NCBI GenBank assembly: GCA_963924565.1
Contig: OZ004610.1
Location: forward strand, 28,334,001 to 28,398,000
Direction: 5' to 3'
Source: Ascidiella aspersa
Lineage: Eukaryota
DNA: 64,000 bases
Shown here: piece after piece, positions 606-62,471 of the stretch
Layout: each line of letters opens with the position of its first letter
How positions within the stretch are numbered: the stretch's first letter is position 1
Made by a program: the position numbers and the translations under genes
Notes under the pieces: model-generated
The model's database searches: none
What the model was told of the DNA's origin: nothing
The model's input: only the letters and a program-made list of their open reading frames with translations

Positions 606-3600
606 CTACAAGGGCGACCAGTGCCAGATTGACATTCGCGAGTGCAACTCCAACCCGTGCCAGAACGGTGGCAGGTGCTACGAACCCGAACCTGCCATGT
701 ACAGGTGCCAGTGCCCACGTGGCTACGAAGGAGATAACTGCGAAATCGGTAAGATTTGAGATGACTTGCTTTAATTTTGAAACATCACACTTTTATCAAC
801 CTTTGGTTAAATAATCGCGGTTGCCAAAATATCGGAGCAGGTTTTGCAGCTTTGGGGTCTAAACCCTCATCAGATAACTCTGAATCAGGGCTGAGGAATC
901 GGAGTCGGACTCGGGACTCGTGACTCGACGGAGTCGGTTTTGTTTTGCCGAAGACGGACGGGACTCGAGTAAGACCGCGTAAAACTACCCGAGTCTGTAC
1001 TCGGGACTCGACAAAATCTTACATTTGGTCGGAGTCGGACTCGGGACTCGGGAGTCGGACTCGGGTATATTTTTTTGGTCGGAGTCGGACTCGAGTTGTT
1101 TTAACCGACTTCGCAGCACAGCTCTGAATAGCTTTAAACATCGCACTTTTGTTTTTCAATCTATAGGTAAATTTTTGCCAACTACGAAACAACCGACCCA
1201 GGTTCATCAAAATAGGGGGTGTTTAGCTTGTGCGGCCCTCTCATTATGACGTAACACAGGCAAACAAAGGGCGGCCAGTGGTGCAATTAAACGACGAGCG
1301 GTCATTATTACGCGCGATGCTTAACGCCGTGTTTGTGCTTCTGGAGGGAAAAGGTGCAGTTGCCTTTTCGTATTTTGGCATTTTTTCACTATCGTCAAAT
1401 AAATCGTTGACTAACTTTGGTTGGCTATTGCAGTTTTATCTTTTAAAATTCTAAACTGTAAGTCTTGTACCACTGTTTGCATTCTTCAACTTTTATCTGA
1501 TCAAGCATAATTGTACGAAAGCTTGTCGAATTTCGTAAGGCAATACGTCTTTCAGCAGCGCCACCAAATTCATATGTCAAGGAATTTTTTTGTTGAGTTT
1601 ATAAACTAGCGGACAACTAAATTTGACTAGAAATAAAACAAATTGAGTTTTGAGCAGGTGTTCGTTTTTTAGCCGAAAACCGTTATGATTATGGCTATAG
1701 GGTAATCACTCAGTATTGCACCAAATTTTTGTTTTAAGGAATTTCGTGTTTTTGTTTGGCACACATGCTTGCTTGTACCATGCGAGTCTATAAACACCCC
1801 GATAAATTCGAAAAAAAATTAGATTTTAGTAGTGCATCAAAGTTTTGAAACAGTTTTCTTACTTTGGAAGCCACATGAGCGTGAATATTCATGTGGTAAC
1901 TATAAATACACCTAAAGTAAGAATAGTATTATAAATTTTACAAAAGTGTTAGTTTACATATACGAAGCCATGCTATTTCTCAAGATTGTTAAGCTGGCTT
2001 CTCTACAATCCAGGTGTAACCAACTTATGTTGATTGCCATCTACAGAAATATTTTTAAAAACTCTCGATCGAATGGTTTGGTAAAAAAGTCACAAGAACA
2101 CTAATTAAACACTTTGAGCGTTAATTGCATTCCAAGCCAGCGATGGAGGTTAATTTGTTATGTCAAAGAACTCGTTATTAAGCTTGTCCAGACAACAATA
2201 GGTCATTTTAATGTTCCGCTTGTGTGCGACAGCTACTATAATGACGTAACACATGTTTGACGCGGTAGACCAGGTGTAATGTGGCGATCGACGTGTTAGC
2301 TTCCCCTGTAATAAGAGGCGCCCACAGAAAATTATCCATTGGGGCAGCAATATGAATATATACACATAATTTAACTTTAGTACCAGTACCTATAATATTA
2401 ATATGTACATACGATTTCATATCAGTGGAAATTTATATACAAATCAACGTTATTCCATTAGTAACTTAGTAAAACTGATATACATTTGGACAGTCAAAAA
2501 CAAATTGAACTTTTCCCATTTGTTAATCTTTCTTTTCCACAAAGTCGACAACCCACTTCATACTTTTTTTTAAATATTTCGCAGGCGACGGAGTCCAAGA
2601 AGAAGAAGAAGAAGACAAAGAGGAAGCCAAAGACGAAGGAGCAAAAGATGAAGAGGAGGGAGCGGCAGGAGGAAGCAAGCAGGAGCAGTCGGCTCCTCCC
2701 AACCCGTGCGACTCGCATCCGTGCAAGAACGGGGGAACTTGCATCTCGGGAAGCGGGGAAGATGAGTACGACTGCCAATGCAAGGAGTTCTACGAAGGAG
2801 ACAACTGCGAGATTGGTAGGAAGCGGTCGATGATTTAATTATGTGCATGTTGCTATTGCGGGAAAAGTATGTGGTCAGCCCAAAAACATTCTCCATATCT
2901 TATATTGCTTTTTTAACACTTGAATTCGTCTTTGGTACAGAAATTCTGCAATGGTAGAGCTAGAATTCGGATATTGTAGAAGCCAGTGTTACCAATTTAG
3001 CTTTTAACACAGTGCTGTGTTACGTATTTGCAATATGTCAAGCACAGCTGCCGACAATAGAAGATCTTTCTGTTTACTTTTTTTTATTGCTTTTACTTAT
3101 TATTATATATATTGAATCTCAAGTTGCGTTTTACGGCTTAATTCTAAGATTGTTAGTTTAAGCTACAAAACAAATAATACGACACCATGCCTTCAGCGAT
3201 AAATGTACAAACAATAGAACAGTTTTTACCAATTTTTTATATGCATTTACTGGTACATTCATGACCGAATTTCTTTCTGTTTACATTAAACTGTTTTATG
3301 TGCGCTTAAGTTTTAATGGGCCTTTACCAGTTGAGACCCACGGCTCTACAAATCAAGAAAAATAAATGTGAGCATAATGCTAACGCCCTTAGTTTAATCT
3401 GAAGAAATGGGTCTTTATACTCACCCCTAAATCGTGGTAGACCGCGGGTAACACATATACTGCATCTGTGTTGGGCAGGGCTGCGGAGTCGGAATAGGGA
3501 CTCGGGACTCGGGACTCGGTGGAGTCGGTTTATATTGCTGGATTTGGATCCGGGACTTATACTATATAAGTACTATATTTTGGATCCGGGACAATACTAT

Positions 3601-6185
3601 ATAAGTCCAAATGCCGACGTACGTACGCGCGCCGCCGAGTTTCAAAACTGACAAGGCCGTAAACTGTAAATTGGAAATATGGCATAGCATATGATGGAAT
3701 TTTTCCCATTCATGTTTCGTGTGTGGTAGATTTATATAACAGCCCTATGAATGAATTGTTGTATATTCACCCTATTGTAATAACAAAAATGGGTGAGATA
3801 AAGGCTGTAAAGTCGAAGACGGGGCGTTAGACTCGATAAACACGGCCGAAAAGTCGAACTCGGTACTCGAAAGTCGCACTCCGGTTATTGTTAATCGACT
3901 CCACGGCCCTGACTGTAGGCATGTAACAAAACACCAAGAAAATCGAATATCTTCTCTTAGAAACCGGGTGCAAGAATCCGGGTATTCCCCAAATCGACGA
4001 AAGCAAGCGTTTCGCGTCGAGGTCAAGAGTTCAGATCTCGTGCGACGATGGTTTTAACTTGGAAGGCGAGGACGTGCTGACTTGCCACGACGATGGATCG
4101 TGGTCCCACGACATGCCGGAGTGCGTCGGTGAGTGTGAAGAAGTTGGGTGAAAGTGGGGTAAGCACCTACTCAGGGGGTTACAGGTTTCACGTGAGGTCG
4201 TGAACTGGTTAAATACCTTTTTCCTGCGTTGTTTTGTTTTATTTCGAAACGATATGAAGTCGTTTGGTTTAAAACGTTATTTACAAATTCGGAACAATTT
4301 TAGATTACTGTTTATGAAAAAATTGGGGTGAAGGTAGGGGAAGCAACTAATCAGGGGGTGATAGGGTTTCACGTGAGGTAGTGAACCCATTAAAAGGATC
4401 ACTACTCGTCCGATACTAGGGTGGTATTGGTGCCGTAACCAAATTTATGCATAAATTTCAGGCACGATTTTTAATTCAACGTAGCAATTTGTGCCTTAAA
4501 ATTTAGAATATAGAAGATACTATAGTTTAACAACATGGTAACTAAACTTCTTAACTTTAAAGCAAATTCTAGCCCAATAACCTGAAAAAACTACATTTGA
4601 ACGGTTCAATTCACATATTTTGCTTGTCAGGGCACTGTAGTGACGTAATTTGGTATCGTATCGCGATATCGGGCGAGTAACGGTACTAACACTTAGCATC
4701 TGGTATCGGCGCCAACGTTATATCATCGGTCATCCTTAATCATAAGCCCTATATTTTGCGAAAAATCAGAAATGAAAATATAAAAATTGTACACTCCGTA
4801 AAGATGATTATAAAATACTTGTCTGGAACCCTAATATGAAGAGTGAGGCCCATTTGTTTTTTGCCAGAAAATTTTTCCATAGCTATCTATATTCTGATAT
4901 TGGTCATTATATGGCTTAACGTTTACTGGAGGGCATTTGTGAAATATATGCGGTATCGATCTCGGTATGGGATATCCCTGCTAATAATGGTTGAAACACT
5001 TTGCAAAACGTTTGCAATTGAAATACGTTTACAATTTAATTTGGCTTTCCAACAGTTTAAATCACTTTCCGTGTTTATAGTAAAATATGGGATTATTTTT
5101 CAGGCGATCCCGCTTCCGCCGCGGCAAGGCAGAAACAGGAAGGCGGAAATTCCAGTTGGCAAACCGCAGTGGTCGGCCTCGGGGTGGCGCTAGGGATCGT
5201 TGCCACGCTCTACGGAGTTTGGCTCATCCAGGATAAGTAAGTACATGCTGAATTATTATATTTGACTTCAATTTTGTGTCATATTGATGTTTTAAGTGGG
5301 TTTAAGGCAGGAATTTAATTAAAAAGTAATACCATTTTAATTATCACATTGAGATGTTAATTCAGCCTTCATATATTTCATATAACTTTAAGTTACGAGC
5401 CCTAACGGGGTCCCCAGGTTTAGAATCCCTGGTTCAAGGGTTAATCTTTTTCTTTGACGTTACTGACCATTCGTTCAATCGTATCTTTGTGACATACAAC
5501 TAAGTACGATAGATTAAGTTTTTTGTTTTAGAGTAATAAAGAGTTAGGGGTCTAAAAAAATCAATGGCTTGTAAACCATGAACCCCCCCTCCCCCCCCTA
5601 AAAATGATAAAAATTAAAAACAGGAAAAATAAAAATCCTGTAAAAATAAAAATAAACATAAATAGATTAAACAAAATGCTTTCAATTTTAAGCCATTTCA
5701 TTATTTATGCTCACAGCCCACTATATTCCAGCTACATTCATTTTAGTTTCTTCTAAAAAAACACCACAAAAATAGCAACACACTTTTTTTAAAGCCTCGT
5801 GGTAGCTTAATATATTAATACACGCTATAGGATATCAGCAATACACGCTATAGGATATACTTTTCCAATATTTTTTTCAGCTCTGTAACTTTCTTTTACC
5901 AATTTTAGTAGAGATGTTCCTATACCCTCACCTTTTTTGCTTAAGTATAAACTGTCCAAAACTTCACTCGTGACCCGCGCGTTATATGTCTTCTCACCGT
6001 AATGTGCTTCAAGGCCCTGGTTGCAAGTGGGCTCGGGCGGAACGGCGCCGGGTGCAGGTCTCAAGGCCAACATGAACAAGGCCGACACGATATCGATCAG
6101 CACTTACAACATATCAAGTGACGAATCAGACGAAGACGAACGACCGACAAAGTACTCCTCCAATAACTACATTGACGTGCCTTGA
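606..6185 (+). CDS. 3' part of a type I membrane protein: EGF - acidic linker - EGF - sushi/CCP - TM - Tyr-containing tail (5' exons lie upstream of the window)
   Basis: Phase-compatible GT-AG exons: 606-748 ([36 protein letters not shown]), 2585-2815 (E-rich linker + [25 protein letters not shown]), 3961-4128 (sushi, [36 protein letters not shown]), 5104-5236 ([24 protein letters not shown]), 6014-6185 (tail ending [19 protein letters not shown]). Confidence 0.88.
886..1121. mobile_element. hAT-type MITE with internal (gactcg)n repeats
   Basis: Perfect 8-bp TSD ctctgaat (878-885 and 1122-1129); imperfect TIRs related to cagggctgcggagtcgg. Second copy at 3476-3911. Confidence 0.8.
3476..3911. 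mobile_element. hAT-type MITE, same family as 886-1121
   Basis: Begins cagggctgcggagtcgg, ends cgactccacggccctg; gactcg repeats; internal ~30-bp duplication at 3543-3606. Confidence 0.7.
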
Positions 6186-9100
6186 CCGGGAAACGATTTA
6201 ACTTGGAAATTCGGCTTCGTGGAAGTCGACTTATATTGAGCTTGTTTCTATTTCGCGTTTTCTTGTACATATTTTATATATATGTTGGGCGTTTTTTCAG
6301 TTCTGCAGAGTATAAGGTGTACAGCATGATTTTAGAAAGCTCTTAAATGTGTTTTTTCACAACACGGGACCATTTTAATGCACAATATATTGCAAGGAGT
6401 TTAAGAAGGATGAAGTATTTTCCATGCTTTAATGTTCAATGGGTCTCAGGGCATCAACCCACTGTACATTTTTGTTCATGGTTCGGGGGATTGGTCCATA
6501 TTAAACTTCTACAAACTTAATAACCCGAAAAACGTTATATGACATTTGTAGGTGCACGGTATTACGCGATAGGTGAGGCCAAATGTAACCTCATCATATT
6601 TTTGTGTGTAGACTTACAAACTTAGTACCACGAACCCCTATGATTAGCTTTGTTATTTTACGTTTATTGTACAAGTAGCTGCAACGCGATGTTTTTTCAT
6701 TTAAATCGACTTTTCGTAGCAGATTTAGAAAGTTTATAACGACGTTACAGATTTTTAAAGTATTTACCAAAGATTCACATACTGCTATCTTTTCCACTTT
6801 AACAAGCGTGATTGCCTTGTCAAAAACCATAACCATTAACCATATAACGCAAAAAGTATAGCGAGAACAAATACCATTGGTTTGATATGCTAAAGTGTTA
6901 TTTTGACCTCGTAAATTTGTACTACATTGCTTACAAAATCGAGTCGGATTAAAAACGCTGCATTTAAACATTATACCAACCCCGTGTAGGGCGAGATATC
7001 TATGATAAAACATTTGTTATCGTCTCGGTGTTACGTAGTGTTAAACATCTTTATGCTTAAAGGAACTAATCAAAACGTGGGAGTAGCGCTGTTTGCACAA
7101 CCGCGAATCTTATATTAAGATGACACTGGTGTTTAATTAATTTTAACGGGTTACGTTCTAAAATAATAGACTTATCATTGCCTTTTTCTCGCCTTGAAGT
7201 TGTGAGACAATTATATAGAATCATCACATTTTAATTTGGATTGTTTCAGCTATGGAATCACAAAGTTGGTAAGCTGTTGGATGAACTAAGGAAAATTGCC
7301 TACAAGCACTACAACCAGTAAAATACTTTTCATCCGATGTAGCAATATAAACATCACATGTTAACGGTGTAAGATGAACACTGAACATGGTAAAGACAAC
7401 AGAGACCGCAAAACTTGAAGTAGATAACCAGAAAGTGCTTACGGGACTCAGTGAATGAGTGGTTGACGCACGAACACGTTAGTGAATTGGGGAAAACGTA
7501 AACATATTTACTCGGATGGGCTTCGTACTTCTTTAAGACAGTTACCCTACGCCATATTTAAATTGAAGCTAATCGTTAAAAATGTTCACTGGTTTTTGTG
7601 ACAAATTTCCTGAATTGGACGAACCGAAATCATTAGTTGTTCTACAACCTTAAATTATTGGTCAATATTTAATTATATAGCTTCAATTCACGATAGCCGA
7701 TCGTTAACATGAAAAGAAAATATAGCTAATGAAGTAATACAACTTGCAAAATATTACAAATTGATCAATGACAATAACTTCATAACAAATAAGTTGAAAT
7801 TTCCCCTATGCAGGAGCCGAAACGAGTTTTGTTCCCTTTAAGAAATAATTACATTATTGCTTTACAGTATGTTTTACGACATATGAAATGCATGCTATCC
7901 GTAAAAGAAATGTATACTATTTTTATGAATTTTACCTTCGGAAACCACATAATAGGTTTATGTAACCTAACCATTGGTTTTAGTCCACCATTTGTATTTG
8001 TCAACACCATACCGTGGGATGTTATTTTGTTCAAAATATGATTAATTTTATTGTGTACTATACATTTACAAAGCAGATCCTATTATTTTAACTGTATAAT
8101 TATGATTATGAATGTACTTCTCGGGTGAACGGAATCAATTGCACAACATTGCGCAAGGCTAAATGCCTAAAAGAGGTTTATTTCTTCCAAAAGTGAATTG
8201 TGCGAAAGCGCTGATTGTTGATCGAAGCGCCACTCGCTTTAAACGAAATCAAATCGCGCCTCAATCAAAGAGATGTCCGTGCGTTTGTTTCGCGAGGATT
8301 TTCAAAGGGCCAAGATTCGGCAACATTCTGGAAAGCTCTCATGTAACCTCTAACCGCGGGCCTGCTCGGTCAGCGCCTTCCCAAATCAAGGATCACTCGA
8401 CGACGGACTCGCTTTGTTCGCCGCTAACTGGTCACCTTCTCGACTTGGGACTTCAGCTGGATGTTTTCGACTTGTAACAGGCCACTTCGAGATTGCGAGA
8501 AAGCGAGAAAGCGGTTGGCCCCAATTACGCTAGCAAACAAGGCGAGGGGCACACAGGAGAGGCCAAAACGTGTGATTGAATATTTTCAAGTTAAGAAACA
8601 ACCACAAACAAAGAGGAGTTTGGCGACCTGGCGAGCAAAGCGCTCTCAAAAGTGAGAGTTTCAGTTCCGGAGTTTGTTTGGAGGTTGTCGTTGGAAAAAA
8701 AACGTTAATTATATAGACAGATATTCGTGGGAAGTTAATCCTTGGTCGTATGTCATGCAGTAGGCGGCGTTTTAGGCCCGATCTGTGATGTTTTAGCAAT
8801 AAAAGTTGTGATGTACTAGCAACAAAAGGTGTTTTGTTTTATAGAGAGAATAAGTTTGGGGCGTTTTACAGCGAAATATTTACCAAATTATTTTATACTT
8901 CCAGTAAACAAATAGTTTGCACCTGCCGAATTTGCTAAGATTTGCAACTTTAACCTACATTAAGGACAAGTCGAATAATTTAACTCGTTAGCGCTAAGGG
9001 TTATGTTAAATTTCCGTTAAAAGGCTACATTATTGATTAACGGCATATTTTTACAACGCTGAATGTTGCATATCAGCAAGTTTTATTTGCTTTTGTAGAA

Positions 9101-9193
9101 CATCGAATTGTTTAGTATTTGCCTACATGGCAAAAAGATAAAAATATAGAAAGTCTTTAAAATGTTCGTTTACTTGTTGATGCAAAGAATATC

Positions 9194-12100
9194 ATGAAAC
9201 GGAAAACAGTCTCTCATTATTTGTTGCCACTTGCCTTTCTTCTGTGCATTCGCATCTTCGTGGGTAAGTAGAAAATTTGGTTTTAATTACTCATACTGGA
9301 TAGGATAGGGCGTTACAATACGTCCGTTCTCCTTTATTGACAAACATTCTGGCTTCATTTTAACATTCTAAATTTGTATTACATTTAGAAATTAATACTC
9401 GGAGTTTGTTTTCAATTCTGGCTATTTACGATCGCCAGAACTCGTAACACATAGGTACAATAAACACACTTACCCTCATTGGACTAATTGGCATGCATAA
9501 AATTTTAAATTGTTATTAGACCAAAGACCAATACTGGGACGATAATATCGGGTATCTCATTCGGTACATTTGTATAAAAAGTGTATAAAAACGGCGCTTT
9601 TGTTTGTAAAAGTGAAATGTTTCGTATTTTGGGGTAACCTGTTTATAGTTATAACCTTATAAAGGGCAATCCAGCATCATTGATGTCTCGCAAAAGCGAA
9701 AATGTGCAAAAAGATAAGTTGACCACCTTTCGTGTTTTAAAGGGGTTGTTCCACCTATCAACGACCTTTCCTGGCCATGTATAACTTTTTTTGAAAATAA
9801 ACTATTTTGTTGAAATTAAGTTATTTATCAATTTATAATGTCAAAGATTATATTAACCAAAAAAATAAAACCTAGCGCAAACTATTGATTTTTACGTATA
9901 GGGTGATTAAACATATAATAATCCAAGAAAGACGCAATAATACTACACTTGTATTAAATATTCTAAACTCAACATAACGTCAGAAATCTGCTCGGGTATA
10001 CCTCCCGAAATACTTATACGCGACCTTGGTGGAACGTGTCTCAAGTTTCGAACAACTGCTGGTTTAACGCAATTCCCAACATTATACTTTTAATGTAGTT
10101 CATCTTCTTAGTTGTAAATTTTACAAACTAAACAAAATTAATGACACCAATGATCTGGTTCCTAAGTGACATTACTATTATGCTTAAACAAGCAAAATAG
10201 ATAGAATTGAAACGTTCAAAGGTAACTTGATACGCATCTCCAGTTGTTTCCTACTATTTGGAGCATGATGGTTGGAGATTGTAGTAAGACGTAATAAGAA
10301 TATCAAAGCCCATACAGAAGTAGGTATCATTTTTAGCCTCTATGTTGAAAATGAATAAAGAGTTATTCGCAACGTTCAAAATGATACCTACTTCTCTTTT
10401 GATAAACTTTTAGTTCCCATCCTTACGCTTTAACGTTTTTGTCTCCAAATGACAGGCAAAGCTCAGGAAGACTGTGGTGGGGTCCTTACAGCGACCTGGG
10501 GCTACATAATGAGCCCGGGGTACCCTGTGAATGGCCAGGAGGACGCCAGGTACCCCCCAAGTGTTGACTGCACTTGGACCGTCCCTGGGGAATCGGATAC
10601 TTTACAAAGGGTGAGGTTAAATTATAAAATATATTTTTTTTCACGTTGCAACGAAACTAGATGTGGTAGCCTTGTTTGCCAACATGAAACTAAATGTCAT
10701 GAAAGTCAAACCCAGTCCATAAGGCAGTTGTTTTCACAACAATTTGAATGTCACAACACTACTTACGCTGCAAATAAGTCATTTTAAATGACCTAAAAAG
10801 TCCCAGTCAAGTTGTTAAAGTCTAAATTAATTCAAGTCATTTGTAAAATCAAGTATTTTGTGACAAAGTCAAGTCTCAGTCAAGTCATAATTGGAGCAAG
10901 AAAAGTCATTAACTCCGTTTCATACAAAATTAAAAATTAAACTAAAAAAATGAAAGTTCAATTATGAGCAATAACATACATACAACAAAAAGGCAACATT
11001 TAGCACGAAAAATGTAGGCCTATTATGGGCAAAAATAATGATAAACAACCCAATTTATAAAATAATGCGTAAATTTGTGTTTTTTATGTTACTTTTAAGA
11101 AAAAATATCAAAGCCTTTATATTTCGAAAAAAGGTCCTTTATACTTCGCCTTCTTTCCTTTACTTTTGTTCTCTTTTCTAGTTTTTTTTATCGCTTTTAT
11201 CATCACTTGAACTCTTACACTGATAATGGCATGGGATATTGCCGAAACATTTTTGAACAACGAAATGTCGATTTTATCTAACATTATTGCTTTTGATATT
11301 TTTATTGAAACTAATAAGAACGCCTGTATATTGTGTTCCAAAATAAGGTTACATTTTTTTATTGTAAATGCGCTTTTTTGATTTCCACATTGAGATATAA
11401 CCGTTGTAACAAATTGAAACAACTTATATTTGAAAACTTTGAAACATAAAGGTTGGAGGTTGGAGTAAGACGTAACAAGAATATCAAAGCCCATACAGAA
11501 GTATAGGTAGCATTTTAAATAACATTTCATTTGTTTTCAACATCAAGATAGTTTGAATACATCACGATGTTAAAAATGAACAAAGAGTCATTCGAAATTT
11601 CAAAAAGATAGCTACTCTTGCATGAGCTTTTATATTCTTATTACGTACATTTATAAAGTTGCGTTTCTTCGACCTTTCCATCGAACCTGGTGAAAACAAC
11701 TCCAACATAACGTGCGATTACGACTATCTCAACGTTAGTCTGCCCTCCATCGGGTGGACAAAGTATTGCGGGTAAGTCCTGAGTTACTCAGTTAATTGTA
11801 TTTACTTGGGTACACGATCTGTAATGTAGCTTGGTAATAAATTGCAAAGTGTCAAATCTACTCAACATTTTTGGATTTGCAATTTATCATCAAGCTAATT
11901 GTATTTACGTTTTAAACTTTTATTTCATTTGTTCTGTGGTTCAAACGGCGCCTGTCCTTGTCGTTTTATGCAAGCTCTAAAAAGGGGTTGGTAATAGTGA
12001 AGACATATGAAAGTATGTAGAAAACTATTGTGTTGACACTTTCAATAAATCTTTTTTCTACTTTTTTTAAATGTTACAAAAGCTCTGGCGAAATGTACTG

Positions 12101-15100
12101 ATAATTCTTTTTTAAACCATTCGGTCTGATTGATCTACGCGCCAAAATCAAAGCGTCTTAACGATTTCCGGAATATCATTAATCAGGCAAAGCCAAGTGA
12201 GCGTTTTCCCACTTAGATTTACTCTTCACACGCATCTTAAACGAGAAGAAACGCCAAAGAATTTGTTACTTTGTATCGTCTAGTAGGCCTGCCAACTCTT
12301 AAGTAGGCTTGTTTTTGCAGCTGGGTGCTTGTTTCTTGGCCTGAGTGCTTCGATGGCGTTAGGTACAACGACAACTTGTCGCTCATTTGGTTGAGGGATA
12401 AATTCAGGGGTGAACGTTGAATAATTTTCTTACTGTAGCGCATTACTTTTTTAAGAGATGACGTCACAACGTTGCGTCATAACAGGACGCTTAAAACATG
12501 TTACCTTTGTAAACTTTAGGTTCTCGTTCTATGTATAGTGCACAAATACATGCAACTGAAATCTTTGTTTAAATACATTGAAGGAGATGGCGTAAAATGT
12601 AATGGTCTGGTAAAAAACGAACAAAACAAAAAACATTTTTTAGCAGTACGACGTACATGAAAATTATATTTATACAAAACAGTCTGGCATACTTTCATCA
12701 CTGTCAATATTTGTCTAGTGACGCAACCTTCAGCGTCTTTAAGTTATATTTTAACTTTTATCGAAATGTTTAACAACGATTTACAAAAATCTGGCCCGAA
12801 ATCATTTAGAATCTAGATTAACGCATTTGCTTAAACGGCGCTTGGTCCAAATGTATTAAACACAATTTGCTTCGATGGGCCTGACAAAAAAAGAAAAAAA
12901 AAACATTAGGATAAATTTAATCTGTGAGCTTTTTTCTCGATTTCAATTAAGTTTACGTTAATTAAAAAAATGCTTTTTTCGTGTATGTTTTTCAGACTTA
13001 AATGATTGAGAATTTGCTTTTAAATCATAGAAACCTAACTTACTCTTTGGTGTTTACTCACGGTAAACTTTACGGTTTTAAACCGGCAACACTATATCTG
13101 AGCGCCAAATATTTTGAAAACATTTTTCGTAATGTTGACATCTTCGAACGTCCTTGTTTTAATGTGTCAAATCAACCGATTAAAAAAACTGGAAGTTGTG
13201 TTTTTGCTATCGTTACCAATTTTCTTACTACTTGTCAGACTATTACGTAAAACAATTGCCTTCATCAGTGTTTCTCGGACTTTTATGGTTAGGGGCACCT
13301 TTCAGAAATAACAAATATATTATCATAATAAATGTTAACTGGAACAACTCACATCAACTCTACACAGCGTGGAAAGTTATAATTGAATTTATTCTACTCT
13401 AATCTTTCACAACAAGTTGCAAGAGTTAAGCAAAAATAAGACTCTTAACGATTTCCAAATATCTCTCGGCACCCTCGAGGCTTCGAAATGGGTACTGCGT
13501 CACCCGGTTGAGAACCACTGGCCTATATATTTAACCCTAGCAGCAACTATGCTTACCGTTTTATCGCTGTTACTATTTGCATCCCAGCTCATTCAGGCCC
13601 CCTATGGTCTCGGGTTTGGGAGAGCTGACCCTCCATTTCCACAGCGACGAGTCGGTAAACTACCGAGGATTCCGGCTTGGATACCAAAGTACGTGATTTT
13701 ATTTTTTTTTTCGGTTCAATGTATAGTGGAGTGTCCAAGGTTGTAGGTATCTTCTATTGATATAAGTTAGGTTGATCCCCTGTGGACCGAATTCGGGTAG
13801 AATCCTACATTTTTTCCCCTAATTACATAAAAAATGTTAGTAATTACATTCAGCTCCCGAGCATAGTGGTTGGAGATTGTAGTAAGACGTAATAAGAATA
13901 ACACAGCCCATAAATTACATAAGTAGGTATGTTGAAAATGAATAAAGTGTTATTCGAAACGTCAAATGATATCTACTTCTGTATGGGCTTTGATACTCTT
14001 ATTACATTCAACTCAATTACAAACTAAATATGTAAAAAAGAAGATATCTCCTCGCCCCAATGCACGTTAATGACGACAATGACTTCGAATGGTAGGAAAA
14101 ATATTCGTTTTTTAGATTCGTTTTTTGGACACTGATGATGCCGTGATTGGCGAAATATATTTCTCTTTTATAAACTAGAACCTATAGTGACTGATTTTGA
14201 CTGAGACAAGAAAGTCTATACTGTTTTACATTCAACTCAATTACAAATTACAGTTGATTTATGTGGGCAGCATAACTTAAGCCAACAAATACCATCATTC
14301 ACAAACCTTTTACCGCCACTGGTTGAAAGAGTTCTAATAGCGTTTGAACAAAACGTTTTTCCGCATTTAAAAAAAAGGCTTTTAAATGAAAATAAATACA
14401 CCTGGATAATCATATTTCTGATACAGAGCAAGACAAATACAATCCATGCGCGGCACTGCCCTGCAAACAAAATGGAGATTGTTCGGCCAGCCAGGATGGC
14501 ATCAATTACATCTGCAGCTGCCATGCTGGGTCTGTATAGTAATTATTACTGATTTTAGCCTTGTTTTCGCTTCTTTTGACGAGTTCTTTTGAAGAGTTGT
14601 CTTTGTATCCTGAAACGTATTTCGTCGAGGTTTACCCATGAGTTTTACTCAGGGGTGTCCAACAAGCGGCACGCGTGCCAAATGTGACACGCGACCTAAT
14701 AAAAAATGGCACGCAAGCCCTCCCCCAAAAACTAAAATTGTTATTTAGCCAATTGCAAAAAAGCTCAATTTGCTATTCAGCTAATTGTCAGAAAATTCTA
14801 AGTTTGTCATTCAGCCAATTGTCATTGTTTGTTCACAATATAAAACAATCGCGGCAATCACGAAAACCAACAATTACTTTTGATATAGTAACATTGTACT
14901 GTGTGGAGGCTAGCATTCACATAACTATATAGCTTGGTGTGAAGAAACAAAAGTTAGCTCACCGAGAGACACTTTGATGTAGTGATGCGCATTTCTACTA
15001 GACGGTTTGTTTTTTTAAGTTGAAATAAACGTTCTTATTTTTTGTAAAAAAGCGCTTTTATGATTAAAAAGAATTGGTTCGGTTACGAAACTTTGGCACG

Positions 15101-18100
15101 GGAAGAAGTTATAAGATAAAAATTGGCACGCCGGCATGTTTGAGTTGGACACCCCTGGTTTAACTTAGACAAACTATATTTGTATACGGCCGTATTTGTC
15201 TAATTCTAAATAGAGGAATCAGGTGGCACTACGTACAGACAAATTTTATTGAATTCTCGACAAGCTTTCGCACAACCGTGCTTCATCAGGTCAACAATAG
15301 GGTGTATCTTTATAGAATCCAAAACCATCGGCGGCAGGTTTTTAGATCACTGCTCCGCTGACGCGTATATTAACAAGTAAAACTCATAGTTAAAAACATG
15401 AGTAAAAACAGGATCAGACGTTCTGTTTAAAAGGAAAATATATTAAGTGGCATCATCAGTTCCTGTAAGAGTACAAATAAATAAAATCAGAGCGCCATCA
15501 GGTCAAAGTATGAAGGATTTTAAATTTGTTTTTTCTACAGTGCCACCTGATTCCTCTATTTAAACAAATTAAAATCTTAGTATAGTGAAGGTATACCATA
15601 CCAGCGGCAGCTACAATACTACACGTAAAATCACAAAGGAATGCATATTTATATTAAACGTCGCGATCAGACATGAAGTTGCATTTTTGAGTAAAACATA
15701 TTAGTGAAAAATGGATAAAAACAGCCAAAGTTTTGTGCCTTTTTCTGGATTCACAACACAGAACCTCAAAATGTGATCAGCTCATCTTATTGTCAATTGG
15801 TCCTTTGTGCATAGATGGACCGGGCCGACGTGCGAAATCGACATTGCAGAATGTGACTCGAATCCTTGTCAGAACGGCGCGATCTGTAGCGAAGCCGAGG
15901 GACCCAATATGTACAAGTGCCAGTGCGCTGTACAATGGGAGGGCGTCAACTGCGAAACGAGTAAGAAAAAAAAGGATTTTATTATTATGTGTCCACCAAA
16001 AAAATGTTTGGACACACGTTGTTTTTGTTATTTATTATTTTTTCTCCAGTTTATTTCTTGTTGTTTTTTCAGGCTTAACGTAATTTTGTTTAACGCCTTA
16101 TTGGGCAAAGTATATACAAATTGTTGAAGTTTGTTGCATTACTTAACTTACAAAAGAAAATCGCTTTTTTTCTTTTAAAACGTTACGCAATTTTCATTGC
16201 TATTTTTCCAAGGTTTGTTTTCAGTTATACAGATTTTAACCGCTTTCCCCCCAAAATGGTCTAAATACTACATGTTAAAAAATGGTTTGACATTTGTTTA
16301 GACTTTTTATTTGTCTATTTTTTACTTTTATGCCCCACATAAAAACGGTATGGTTAACATGTTCGTTCTTCGAGTTAGATATAGATATACACGAACGAGA
16401 CGTACGCTTTTTGAGGATCATTATTACATGCAATTTAACCGTTTCAGGGCGAAGTCCTCCTTGCGATCCAAGCCCCTGTAAGCACGGAGCAACTTGCATT
16501 CCGGTCGGAGATTTCGAGCGAGAGTGCGAATGCGCACCTGGTTATTTGGGCGAACTGTGCGACGAAGGTATGTGAACTTAAATACGTAATTTTGAATGTT
16601 ACGTGCGGTGCTTCTATTAGCAGATATAACAGTGTTGTAAACAAGTCATTTTGAAACATCAGGTCAATTTCAAATCAGCTTCTTGTCAAAAAATTATGAA
16701 CAATAAATACCTTATTTAAAAATAACGCTAAACGCCACAAATAGCAAGAAATTTGTTTTATGCGCAAAACTTAACATCAATAACCCTTAGTAAAAACATT
16801 TGAACCTAACTCATTTGTCCAAAAGACTTAATTTAAGTCAAGTCATTTTATTCAAAAGAGCTAATTCAGGGCAGGTCATTTGAAAACAGTGACGTAAGTC
16901 ATTACAACACTGGCAGATAAGGGAATTTTTCGTTGTCTTGTTACATTCAGGTCCAGATTGCAGCAAAAATGTTGAATCATAATGCAAAGACGAGATCTTA
17001 TTTTCGAGCTTGACTGCGGGCTTAACTTCACAGTTGCTAAATTTGTTTGGCAAAATAATTTTTGTACTGGAAACTTATCATGTAATAATGCTAAAAACAA
17101 ACGATAATAAAAAATGGCGTAGAATATCTTATAATCAACTATATGTCCTTGTGTGATCATACTGTCATAGTAAAAAAAAACGGCCAAACCATTTATTTGC
17201 CAACAATAAAACCATATGTGTTGCAACAAAATATTAATATTTGCTTAATGAAAACAAAGGCTATAACCACACCTAAGGGTCTAAAATTAAACGCATTAAT
17301 ACAATACTAAAAACTATATACTTTTTAATTTAAATTGCTAAATGATTTGAGGTGACACTGTGACAAATCGCTTAAGAATCTTCGAGATTGTTTTGAATTA
17401 TTAACTGTCTAAGAATTACAGTCAAATCAGATTGGTAACTTACGCACAATTGTGTCGGTGAAAATTCGAAAACACTATAAAGGCAAGTTTTTAATTTCCT
17501 ATGGCTTTCACTTTGTTCTAAAGAGACCGGTTGCGGCAACCCAGGAATTCCCTACCTGAACAAAGACAGGAGATTTGACTTTGACACCGTTCTGCAATTT
17601 TCGTGCAAAGAAGGTTACATCATTATTGGACTCACCGTGTCCAAATGTCATTTGAATGGCTCCTGGTCTGTGGCCATGCCGGGATGCCGGGGTAAGTGGT
17701 TATTTTGTTGCATGTCACATTACATATTAGAATATAATTTACCAAAGACACTGCAAAAAACAGTCAAACTAATCTAATGTCAGACAACAATTAATCTTCG
17801 AACACGTTTTTACCCTATCGCACACAAATGTAATGCTTACAGTTCCACTGAAGTTTAGAATTTATTAGGCGGATTTCAATTTTAACTTACAAATTTCTCA
17901 GCCCACAGTACACCTTAAAACATAATTACCCGACATATTTTACAGTTTCTCGTTATTAAAAAAAATGAAATCACAATAAGACAAATAGAGCAACTATGCG
18001 TAAAGCGAAATTATCTATAAAACTTTAGTATTTAGGTCAACGGCATCATAAAATTAATACGCAGTATAGCGACGGAATAAAAATGCTCGAAATAAGCTCT

Positions 18101-19244
18101 AACACGGTCGGAATAATTCCTAAATCCATCGAAATACGATCAAAAATAAAGTCGTATACTGTAAGAAAATGCTATGAGTCAATTGAACACATTTGTTCTG
18201 ACATTGTCATTTTGGGTCTGTAGTTTAAACGTCGCTGCTTTGCACTGAACTAATGGCCTCTGTTTGAAGTTAGGACTAATGGGTGTGGTTAAAATTTGGA
18301 TCAATTGCTTTTACTGACGAAGTTAGTGATAAAGTTAGCGGTTGACTTCGGGGTTAGGCAAAAGGTCGTAATTTTTTTCTTCAGAACGTTTAGGTCTTCC
18401 GCAACTGTGTTTTATTTCAATGATAATGTTGATCTAGTTTCGGTCTTATTGCAGAAATCCATTGAAACATAAAATAAAAAGAGCTCACAAATAATGTTTT
18501 AATTTTAACCATTTTAGAAAATGGAACGTCTACTGAAAAAGAAACAGGCGTCAGTCCCTGGGCTAAGGCTATGATCGGTCTTGGAACCCTATTCACCGTT
18601 AACGTTGTTGTGATGGTGTCTTACTTGGTCTACAAAAGGTTATTGAAAAACATGAAACAACGCAATAATATACTTTATTTTATTTTATATTTTTACTACA
18701 TATTTGTTGTTGGGTATTTACTTAGCATAATGTTAAAAATTCTTAATCGTGTCAAACGTAATTAACCGCAAACTGTAGACTGTAGAGCTATTGGAAGCAC
18801 TACCATGCCTATACCTAATGACAGTACGTGTGTATAACAAAATTAAAACTTTGGAGCATAATGGTTGGAGGTTGGAGTAAGTAATAAGAATATCAAAGCC
18901 CATAAAGAAATGGGTATCGTTTTGAACGTTTCGAATAACTCAATTTATTTCTTTTCAACAAAATTAAAACTGGTATTCAACATACTGGAATAACATAACA
19001 CTGTAGACCTCAGTTCCTTAGGCATGATTTACATTTTTGTGTCCGTAATCGCTAACTATTAGGGTTGTATTACTTTTTATTTTGCAGTCCTGTGTCTGTG
19101 TTGGAAAAACTGAGAAGTCTAACATCAACGGAATTCAATTTGCAAAAGACAACCACACCTGCTCAAATCAGGAAGGAAGTTTCGTGTGTTTCGGCAACTC
19201 AAAGCGAAGATGTAGTCTCATTCGGATCAAGTTATCTTTCATGA
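9194..19244 (+). CDS. Signal peptide-CUB-EGF-EGF-EGF-sushi-TM type I membrane protein (~417 aa), tandem paralogue of the upstream gene
   Basis: Exons 9194-9263 (MKRKTVSHYLLPLAFLLCIRIFV), 10456-10610, 11659-11771 and 13588-13688 (CUB: CGG..GYIMSPGYP..DCTW..CDYDYL..YCG..LHFHSDESVNYRGFRLGY), 14427-14529, 15815-15960 and 16448-16567 (three EGFs), 17524-17691 (sushi), 18518-18638 (TM), 19088-19244 (tail, TGA). Total 1254 nt = 418 codons with an open frame. A possible extra 51-nt exon lies at 14041-14091. Confidence 0.88.
10260..10395. mobile_element. F1 foldback repeat copy (~110-bp arm ggagcataatggttggaggttgtagtaagacg...tgttgaaaatgaataaagagttattcgaaacgttc)
   Basis: Same sequence recurs at ~11451-11646, 13859-14005, 18851-18963, 35231-35370, 36010-36125, 39903-39976, 43288-43415, 45045-45112, 53841-54022 and 54322-54430, as single arms or head-to-head inverted pairs. 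Confidence 0.85.
13859..14005. mobile_element. F1 foldback repeat copy with hammerhead-like core at 13932-13963
   Basis: Antisense arm followed by a sense arm beginning gttgaaaatgaataaagtgttattcgaaacgtc. Confidence 0.8.
14127..14164 (+). ncRNA. Minimal hammerhead ribozyme (family F4)
   Basis: GGACA-CUGAUGA-U-GCCG(UGAU)UGGC-GAA-AUAU-A-UUUCU; palindromic AUAU; helix I pairs at 4 of 5 positions. A deleted antisense homologue lies at 15421-15463. Confidence 0.65.
14650..15157. mobile_element. hAT (Buster/Charlie-like) MITE
   Basis: TIR caggggtgtccaac / gttggacacccctg; TSD gttttact / gtttaact. Confidence 0.85.
15257..15294 (-). ncRNA. Minimal hammerhead ribozyme (family F2), followed by AATAAA
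   Basis: Reverse complement reads UUGAC-CUGAUGA-A-GCAC(GGUU)GUGC-GAAAGCUU-GUCGA, then gaattcAATAAA; nearly identical to 56836-56871. Confidence 0.8.
18851..18963 (-). mobile_element. F1 repeat single arm with U3-A8 hammerhead-like head (18920-18963)
   Basis: Reverse complement UUUUG-UUGAAAA-G-AAAUAA(AUUGAG)UUAUUC-GAAACGUU-CAAAA, then the F1 body ending ccattatgctccaa. Confidence 0.75.
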
Positions 19245-20439
19245 TAATCAGCCGCATCTCGGGTGAAACATAAAATAACTGAACGAAGAAATGGCATCAA
19301 CTAAACGAAACCCTACTCGCTTTGGTAAAATATAAGATTTCATTAGGTGCCATTATAATTTTTAGCCTATTAAACAGAAATCTCCTTCCTTAAGTTTATA
19401 CGCCCTTCTTGTGAGTTAAAAACGTCAACACTTTAGCTTACAAACATGTAAAAAAAAAAAACAACAGTTGCCCAAATAAGCAGTTTGTTTCTATGTTCAG
19501 CACAGGGATTTCTAATGTTTTTTGTTGTTCTACCTCTTGAATATTTTTGCGTTTTGCTAATATGTTATTTATAAAAAGTAAACAATTAATGCTTTTTTTT
19601 TCACCATGTTGAAATGGTTACCTTGCTCGAAATAAGGTGTTAATGATGATTGTAGTATAAATGTGTTTGCTATTTGTCGAATGATTTTATCAGAAGTAGC
19701 CTACACATTGTACTTACTTGTTCTGTAAGTTGCTAACTGAATTGTACCGTAATTTACGTAGATTGTAGAAGCGTCTATTTTGGTATAATAAATCTTTTCT
19801 ATCGTGAATGTGTAGCGTCTATAATGCTAGCCTATCTTACGGATTAATATATTCAAAGTCGGTGATATAAAACGTGGTCAAGCTAGAGTAAACGCAGATC
19901 CAGGATTATTGTTTGGTTGTCAAAAACAAAAAAATCAGAGATAAATTGACTCCACAAACTTACGCAAAACCGGACGGCGTGAATAAGCAGCCTAACTTTG
20001 AGAATACCACACAATTCGTTGATTTTGTTTGAGTTTTAGGTTCGGTGCATGTATGGTCACTGGCCTATACATGTGTACATCTGATATGCAAAATCTGGAA
20101 ATATTTTCTAAACTCAACTATAAAACAAAGTTTAGGACTTCTAGGTAAATGTTAGGGGTGTTTAAATATTTTTAATTTATTTTTTTTATTTTAAGAACAT
20201 TTAATTTTAAAATCCTGGATTGGTTTAAAAAATATGCAGATCCTGTTTCCAATCATAAGAGAAATATTGCCGTTTGATAGCAATGAAGTACCCTACATTG
20301 TGCTACATTTTTGCCTTCTGTAATATTTGATTATTTTTAAGCCCTGATTTTTGTAAATATTTTAGCAAAACATAGTGGTTTAAAATGTTAGCATAGTTAT
20401 AACCTTAAATTTAACCACGTCCGTACACAACACCTTACG

Positions 20440-20853
20440 GGGGTAAAATCTAAACATCGTCGCTTTTAGACTGAATGAAAATATACATGTGGTAAACACG
20501 CACGAAATCGACCCCGAATGGCGAAAATAAAATCACAAAGAAAAAAATATGCGACGGTATCCGGTCGCGCCATAGAAGTCGACTCATTTTGACGGCGACC
20601 GCGGCGGAGAGCGGACCAAGCACTTGCCTTTTCAATTTACAGCTCTTTCCAGGCGTGCATTTTCGGAGCAAACTGCATTCCGTAAGCATTTGGTTGTTAT
20701 AGCGACGTTTGGCCGTCGTCTTGGCGCGTTTCTGTCGGGTAAACACCCCGAAAATGCAGTCTCTCGGCCGCCAGCCAATCGAAGGTTTCTGAGGGTTTTT
20801 ACACTTACAACACCAACAAATCGAACGAAAAACACCGATTCTAATGTTGACAA
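20440..20853 (+). promoter_or_regulatory. Putative CHD1 promoter and non-coding first exon (CpG-rich island)
   Basis: CpG/GC-rich island in an AT-rich background ~1 kb upstream of the first coding exon, ending at a possible donor caa|gtaatg at 20854. Confidence 0.5.
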
Positions 20854-21749
20854 GTAATGTGCTTTTGGTAAATTTGTGAATAAACTCGAGTTTGTACATT
20901 AAAACACTTGATTCCATTCGTCCTTGACCACACCCTTTTTTCAAAAAGTTGCTTTTCCTGGCTTTTTCACCTTTATAAAGCTCAAATAACATGTACTTTT
21001 AGCAAAACAAGCACCAGATTTAAGTTACTTGCATTTGTTTTCTAATAATTTACAACTTTTTAAATTTTTAAAATACCCTTGATTCTTCATTTAATCATAC
21101 AAAACAGTGTTTTATGGTCACTTTGCAAACATAAATAGGAAAGTTAGAGAAAATACAAAGATTTTTAGAAACTATAAACACTGCTTAAAACCTATATTTT
21201 AATGTTACAGAGACTGAATGCATTATAAAACATGCAATGATCATTTTGTTGTACATCTTACAAAACTATAAATTGTAGAAAGCATACATTTTATCAGTTT
21301 TAGCTAAAAAAATGTGCACATTGAAACATTCACTACCAAAAGTGTTTTGCAACATGTGTATACAGTATATTGCTCTGTAAATACATTTTAACTGCAAATG
21401 TCAGTTTCTCTATACTATACTTGGCTAATTTACTAGTAAAATATATAGTATTTTTATCTAATTCTACAAAGTTTGTATCATTGCAGGCCACTCTTAGAAA
21501 ACCTTTACTGACAATTTCCCACAAATTTATTCCTGATCTTACCGCACTGGGAGACAAGTTTTAAAATTTATTTTGATGTAGATATGAGTGGAAACAGCAT
21601 AGACCTTTTCCAGTTTAAAACTAACATTATTTTGTTAATTTTGTGTGTTTATCCAAAAAATTAAATTTTATGTTTGGTTTCAGATTTAGCGATAGGGATC
21701 TTTCGCTCTAGGTACTATGTAAGTTTAGACAAGAGCTACTTATGATTTG

Positions 21750-62471
<40,722 letters not shown>

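Follow-up and report, generated by a model that had tools for sequence, protein, structure and literature searches.

Minimal hammerhead ribozymes (min-HHRs) have been described in the Penelope-like retroelements (PLEs) of animals, in families rich in compensatory changes whose traits include a G10.1-C11.1 pair and a palindromic 15.2-16.2 or loop 3 (Cervera and de la Peña 2014, PMC4209133). The same study reported a U3:A8 variant with ~1,300 matches in Schistosoma mansoni, a Drosophila virilis variant whose helix I has 2 bp, and min-HHR pairs on opposite strands 100-700 bp apart, most copies being single and truncated. PLE insertions show 5' truncation, an adjoining inverted 5'-truncated copy and a one-sided tail of 30-40 bp (Craig et al. 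2021, PMC8557442), and the PLE protein nicks both DNA strands, extends them and initiates reverse transcription internally (Frangieh et al. 2024, PMC11167929). Retrozymes, in turn, are tandem arrays with canonical hammerheads that yield circular RNAs (circRNAs) (Cervera and de la Peña 2020, PMC7229834), and a 2026 preprint derives them from the pseudo-long terminal repeats (pLTRs) of PLEs (bioRxiv 10.64898/2026.07.22.740005). Here we analyse the hammerhead-bearing short repeats, named families F1 to F5, in a stretch of 64,000 nt of the Ascidiella aspersa genome (positions 28334001-28398000 of contig C4, hereafter the window), together with their relatives in the whole 308.6-Mb assembly of 75 contigs.

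At a probability of about 0.9, we read these repeats as insertions of several PLE families and of short derivatives of PLEs. Each unit has a minimal type-I hammerhead near its 3' end, so that heavily 5'-truncated copies retain the motif and look as if they were headed by a hammerhead. The units would have spread by target-primed reverse transcription, using a PLE reverse transcriptase (RT)/GIY-YIG protein encoded elsewhere in the genome. Priming on both strands would account for the inverted 5'-truncated arm, for the junction that varies among copies and for the tail of 30-50 nt at one end only; the tail would also follow from the extension of both strands and the internal start of reverse transcription reported for a PLE protein (PMC11167929).

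The repeats in the window are real, high-copy families of this genome. Majority consensuses of the short non-coding units were compared with the window by BLAST, which recovered each of the families at the sites listed by a first-pass annotation, including about 11 copies of F1; relatives were then fetched genome-wide by sequence similarity to each window copy, with no structure presupposed. First-look candidates in the genome numbered 1460 for F1, 933 for F2, 1815 for F3, 332 for F4 and 587 for F5. The consensuses of F2, F3, F4a/b and F5 are canonical minimal type-I hammerheads. From 5' to 3', F2 reads helix I UUUGAC, CUGAUGA, extra A, helix II GCAC/GUGC, GAA, AGCU, U17 and GUCGAG; F3 reads AUUAA, CUGAAGA, extra U, GAUAC/GUAUC, GAA, ACGU, C and UUAAU; F4a reads AGAGA, CUGAUGA, extra U, GCC/GGC, GAA, AUAUAU, U and UCUCU; and F5 reads UUACA, CUGAUGA, extra U, GGCA/UGCC, GAA, ACGU, U and UGUAA. 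F4b is a sister subfamily of F4, with an intact copy (L066:2531-2572) whose helix I is different (AAGGAA/UUCCUU). F1 invariably shows UUGAAAA, an extra U, GAAUAA/UUAUUC, GAA, ACGU and C, with U3:A8 replacing C3:G8. The CUGANGA core assigned beforehand to all families therefore holds for F2 to F5 and fails for F1, which has no real helix I either. All families have the extra U or A and a helix II that begins with G and ends with C, and the palindrome is AGCU, ACGU, AUAUAU or AUGCAU. Three more hammerhead families came to light by chance next to the loci retrieved, namely L029, L059 and L065, the last of which has the AUGCAU palindrome. The families had also been called unrelated; F1, F3 and F5 proved to align along their length.

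Classification as the minimal, helix-III-less hammerhead of PLEs was upheld, because these features match the published definition (PMC4209133) and because F2 is linked to an open reading frame (ORF) of the PLE type. A scan of the genome for GIY-YIG matches, one of which fell inside an F2 locus, led to a 488-aa ORF (L105) with RVT_1 at residues 27-174 and GIY-YIG at 387-471. The F2 hammerhead lies ~185 nt downstream of the RVT_1 plus GIY-YIG ORF in L105, L106, L030, L010 and L005, the latter four holding fragments of the L105 ORF in the same arrangement with the hammerhead. The nearest Atlas clusters of the ORF are animal RVT_1/GIY-YIG proteins, and a PDB sequence search with the ORF gave no match. 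F2 copies are thus 5'-truncated pieces of an autonomous PLE encoding RT and endonuclease (EN), and the first-pass description of all these repeats as non-autonomous does not apply to them. Its statement that the window holds no RT/GIY-YIG partner was borne out, as the F2-type PLE ORF had no match there.

F1, F3, F4 and F5 seem to be short units, and we somewhat prefer the reading that they were mobilised in trans by PLE enzymes over the alternative that their long master copies merely went unsampled. For F1 and F5, it is the anatomy of the insertions that points to a PLE enzyme.

Several observations touch on PLEs elsewhere in the assembly. At G000:C2:30628752-30640503, four GIY-YIG matches (-) follow each other at an exact 3,422-bp period and one (+) lies at the upstream end, a pattern that resembles PLEs arrayed in tandem, with the terminal copy inverted. 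In L030, long ORFs of another retroelement (428-1381 and 2238-2945, both +), with an integrase-like HFGIQR motif recognised by eye, flank the truncated F2 copy, which indicates that the insertions are nested. The best GIY-YIG match of the genome scan is on G000:C35. A complete UvrC, with GIY-YIG and UvrC RNase H domains, was found in L107 (G000:C11:1-6500) on the 25-kb contig C11, suggesting that bacterial sequence is present in the assembly.

Among the other origins considered, the best surviving one, which we nevertheless hold to be quite improbable, is that of non-LTR retrozymes, in which tandem head-to-tail hammerhead units of 150-450 nt are transcribed, self-cleave, are circularised and are copied by an autonomous element. 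The first-pass annotation had described the repeats as retrozyme-like. Retrozymes and PLE pLTRs have been reported as related (bioRxiv 10.64898/2026.07.22.740005), F1, F3 and F5 units are short (~120-425 nt), no ORF was seen near F1 or F5 at 30 loci each, and at L028:1500-1800 (-) two direct F2 hammerheads lie 223 nt apart, the only tandem-like arrangement among the fetched loci. However, no head-to-tail motifs of the same family exist in the window, where pairs are either opposed or separate insertions, and retrozymes carry canonical type-I hammerheads with loop-loop contacts, the minimal variants being assigned to PLEs (PMC7229834).

The structure of the insertions was then compared among copies. 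At the motif itself F2 is covered by 30 copies, a number that drops to 25 at -50, 13 at -100, 9 at -150 and 2-3 from -200 to -350, with the 3' end 100-150 nt past the core; F5 shows the same 5'-truncation pattern and reaches at most ~-300. An F1 insertion consists of an inverted arm with a fixed outer end, a copy-specific junction and a direct arm whose outer end is ~33 nt short of the end of the other arm. Target duplications of at least 8 bp flank 22/27 F1 insertions (median 12, range 10-15), against 3% of mismatched controls, and opposed pairs ~150-250 bp apart are common genome-wide. Every trait of PLE insertions was found, from the truncated 5' end and the inverted, likewise 5'-truncated copy to the tail on one side and the target duplications of variable length. 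Variable duplications, 5' truncation, inverted arms and a one-sided tail mean retroposition and no cut-and-paste, and the window repeats are retroposed copies with PLE insertion anatomy.

This bears directly on the proposal that the repeats are relics of miniature inverted-repeat transposable elements (MITEs) or foldback DNA transposons whose centre resembles a hammerhead by accident. F1 is indeed foldback-like, with opposed arms of ~75 nt. Nevertheless, the arms are unequal (one has a 33-nt tail), the inner junction differs in each copy and the duplications vary between 10 and 15 bp, so that neither the equal terminal inverted repeats nor the target duplication of fixed length that characterise MITEs was found. 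Moreover, F2, with its linked RT-EN ORF, has this architecture too, and the F1 motif can be aligned in every column with the canonical hammerheads of F3 and F5. We therefore regard this origin as very improbable.

In order to compare the motif with chance expectation, a strict descriptor (CUGANGA, 0-1 extra nucleotide, helix II of at least 3 bp, GAA, a 4- or 6-nt A...U palindrome, non-G at position 17 and helix I of at least 4 bp) was run on the window and on 200 shuffles of it that preserved dinucleotides. It gave 2 matches in the window, both F2 (56836+ and 15294-), against a mean of 0.005 per shuffle. Without the helix I requirement there were 3 matches against 0.055, and a descriptor with the U3:A8 core gave 4 against 0.245. 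The pairs were counted in alignment A3, made of F5, F3 and two further families, since the MAFFT alignments A1 and A2 set F2 and the families with 6-nt palindromes out of structural register. In A3, 93.7% of the cells pair, against 18-49% when the partners were slid, a value that is inflated because the rows were partly picked by a descriptor that demands pairing and that to this extent speaks less strongly for our reading. Among the four aligned families, 8/9 helix pairs differ on both sides, and the consensuses of F2, F3, F4a and F5, retrieved by similarity, also pair. The view that hammerhead-like strings arose by chance in AT-rich repeats, with no common ribozyme ancestry, can draw on the chance-level matches at 847-873 and 24027 and on the broken core of most window copies, yet deserves practically no credence, given the 2 strict matches against 0.005 per shuffle, at least eight families with differing helices and the same core, extra nucleotide, G-C closure and palindrome, and frequent compensatory changes, which already contradict it for the five families.

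Covariance model R1, which was built only from F5, F3 and two further families, without rows of the F2 type, ranked as its top seven matches in the window sites that were already listed (in order F5, F5, F3, F3, F1, F4a and F2). Genome-wide, all of the 150 places scored, out of 71,618 rough first-look candidates, matched it (150/150); F2 scores only at E 0.3-2.5, hence R1 is no census tool. About 100 places in the genome have an identical R1 score of 59.7 bits, which suggests recent bursts, the hammerheads at these places having the same sequence and a single family having been amplified very recently.

The following features make up the window inventory, with positions of the window and the strand in brackets.

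1474-1571 (+), old F2 relic, 73% identity, core CUGAUCA, helix II broken.
10257-10395 (+), F1 insertion: inverted tail-bearing arm, variable junction, direct arm starting 3 nt before UUGAAAA.
11159-11343 (+), F5 copy, 79% identity, hammerhead 11213-11258 with G8>A and ACGU>ACAU.
11434-11648 (unstranded), F1 insertion with the U3:A8 motif on both opposed arms.
11820-11897 (unstranded), F3 insertion: two short opposed arms, no hammerhead, flanking 13-bp direct duplication.
13848-14005 (+), F1 insertion, motif 13928-13970, flanking duplication of ~9-14 bp.
14024-14227 (+), F4a insertion: tail-bearing inverted arm, then direct arm; BLAST match 14110-14227 (+).
15178-15294 (-), F2 copy, 95% identical to the consensus; intact hammerhead 15257-15294, then 3' region.
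15426-15466 (-), F4b relic; 3' strand of helix II and GAA deleted.
18846-18960 (-), single F1 arm with tail, flanking 15-bp direct duplication.
35212-35358 (unstranded), F1 insertion: opposed arms, motif on the minus strand.
43283-43415 (unstranded), F1 insertion: opposed arms.
45042-45115 (+), F1 arm; first part of the core missing.
53834-54032 (unstranded), F1 insertion: opposed arms.
54324-54441 (+), F1 arm with motif and tail.
56826-56881 (+), F2 copy; intact hammerhead 56836-56871 (helix I, CUGAUGA, extra A, GCAC/GUGC, GAA, AGCU, U17).
59088-59197 (-), F3 relic; 3' strand of helix II and G12 deleted.
60370-60576 (-), F5 insertion: hammerhead 60395-60438 (G8>A), opposed tail-bearing arm 60518-60576 (+).
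62033-62183 (+), F3 insertion: inverted 5'-truncated arm 62033-62075 (-), direct arm 62085-62183 (+).

The only intact hammerheads in the window are those of the two F2 copies, and the remaining copies are mutated. In the F3 insertion at 62033, the hammerhead (62085-62129) has lost G12 at a CpG (G12>A). The F4a hammerhead (14125-14164) is on the direct arm and has a mutated helix I; this insertion has a 20-bp target duplication (14004-14023 and 14228-14247), bears its tail on the inverted arm only and landed on the target duplication of the adjoining older F1 insertion (13848-14005). At 60370, the hammerhead arm of F5 matched by BLAST is 60370-60490 (-). G8>A in both F5 copies of the window is a later mutation, because the F5 consensus keeps CUGAUGA. 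The ~11 F1 motif copies are at 10342+, 11544-, 11565+, 13929+, 18960-, 35291-, 43386-, 43389+ (partial), 45042+ (partial), 53930- and 54324+.

Two further strings were rejected. The singleton at 847-873, proposed earlier as a degenerate hammerhead, has AAA instead of GAA, escaped the model at E<=10 and does not exceed chance expectation. The string at 24027 (+), UUGAAAA...GAA plus AAGCUU, agrees with the relaxed U3:A8 descriptor, is supported by no family and likewise stays at chance level (0.245 per shuffle).

An intronic position is plausible for most of the window copies, as a statement about the region as a whole. A large single exon with GPS and 7tm_2 domains, of an adhesion G protein-coupled receptor, is localised at 37600-38913 (-), within 36-40 kb, the one GC-rich part of the window (47% GC), and there is also a weak CUB-like ORF. 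These mark the host as an animal, and marine metagenomes are among the sequencing runs in which the sequence occurs. Between the F4a and F2 copies, 14544-15086 is a further highly repeated stretch, with a summed contig depth ~1000 times that of neighbouring single-copy sequence; such depth over repeats is a rough indicator and no copy number. The window also contains a tandem array of at least 5 units of ~28 nt with 63-81% identity (28019-28204) and a local ~300-bp duplication, 78-82% identical and spaced 1.89 kb (22537-22850 and 24424-24740). A weak SNORD87-like C/D-box match with a terminal stem at 3249-3331 (+) (26 bits, gathering score 50, E 0.78) could represent an intronic snoRNA or be due to chance.

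As regards activity, the hammerhead has practically no helix III of its own, its palindrome of 4-6 nt being able to form one only between two ribozyme copies, and any cleavage would therefore need tandem copies or two RNAs. Dimeric cleavage, as well as a role of the hammerhead in transcript processing, is suggested by the literature on related elements. If, as this literature implies, cleavage needs two copies, those in the window, being single, opposed and mutated, would be inert, and in an opposed pair one arm is antisense and contributes no ribozyme; most window copies are single and mutated, and presumably inert. RNAcofold predictions for monomer versus dimer gave a domain-swapped helix II or extended palindrome duplexes, and as predictions they do not decide on activity.

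Some results weigh against the origin from PLEs. No hammerhead was found in the window by Rfam, whether at the gathering threshold or with E<=10, and RF00163 (Hammerhead_1) had no match across the genome; Rfam misses minimal hammerheads because its models expect a real helix III. The linked Penelope RT/GIY-YIG ORF that the first-pass annotation proposed to look for, present with F2 at the five loci above, did not adjoin F1 or F5 at 30 loci each, the flanks of F3 being outside this search. No complete pLTR-ORF-pLTR copy, and none with an upstream repeat, was among the retrieved loci, a set that excludes the tandem array on C2 and an inverted pair on C9. Finally, cleavage of PLE min-HHRs in vitro was weak and seen only in dimeric or trimeric constructs (PMC4209133), and hammerhead cleavage was dispensable in vitro for the anole PLE (PMC11167929).

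The divergent family F1 has a unit of ~120 nt that starts 3 nt before the core, and its helix I has at most 2 bp. It aligns column by column with F3 and F5, including a common 3' block around GGCUUU, and lacks the five nucleotides with which those families build the 3' strand of helix I. Its summed contig depth is four orders of magnitude above that of single-copy sequence, and it is probably the most abundant family. A speculative and rather unlikely idea is that the hammerhead module of PLE-type elements may be kept for a role other than cleavage, such as RNA dimerisation or recognition by the RT, which we propose because F1, despite the loss of helix I, still has helix II, G12-A14, the palindrome and a U3:A8 pair that is compensatory. 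If true, this would bear on what PLE hammerheads are for.

The features of the motif have all been described already (Cervera and de la Peña 2014), the class being well known and ordinary for an animal genome of the invertebrate type, and these families leave knowledge of the class unchanged. PLE insertion would be the correct label for a large share of the 'unknown' or MITE-like repeats of this genome, roughly 10^4-10^5 motif copies, which carry hammerheads that standard Rfam scans overlook. The families also provide a natural series, from a canonical core to a U3:A8 core without helix I, for asking whether PLE hammerheads cleave in vivo.

Compared with the viroid hammerheads (De la Peña and Flores 2001, cited in PMC4209133), the window motifs are alike in having one unpaired nucleotide between A9 and helix II, whereas the viroid ribozymes are of type III with a stable helix III. 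Animal non-LTR retrozymes are likewise short non-coding hammerhead retroelements that probably depend on PLE enzymes; in contrast to their tandem arrangement, canonical efficient hammerheads and abundant circRNAs, those of the window are scattered copies of the minimal kind, for the most part mutated. The strong 5' truncation, inverted copy, tail at one end and variable duplications are shared with known PLE insertions (PMC8557442, PMC11167929), from which F1, F3 and F5 differ in that they appear only as short non-coding units. The closest likeness is to the min-HHRs of metazoan PLEs, in the type-I topology, the helix III reduced to a palindrome, the extra nucleotide, the U3:A8 variant, the predominance of single truncated copies, the opposite-strand pairs and, probably, the location in the terminal repeat region of an RT/GIY-YIG element. 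With respect to these, the sequence families are new, helix II has 3-6 bp, as against 7-8 bp in the Schistosoma families, and F1, with a unit of ~120 nt, has both the U3:A8 core and a helix I that does not exceed 2 bp.

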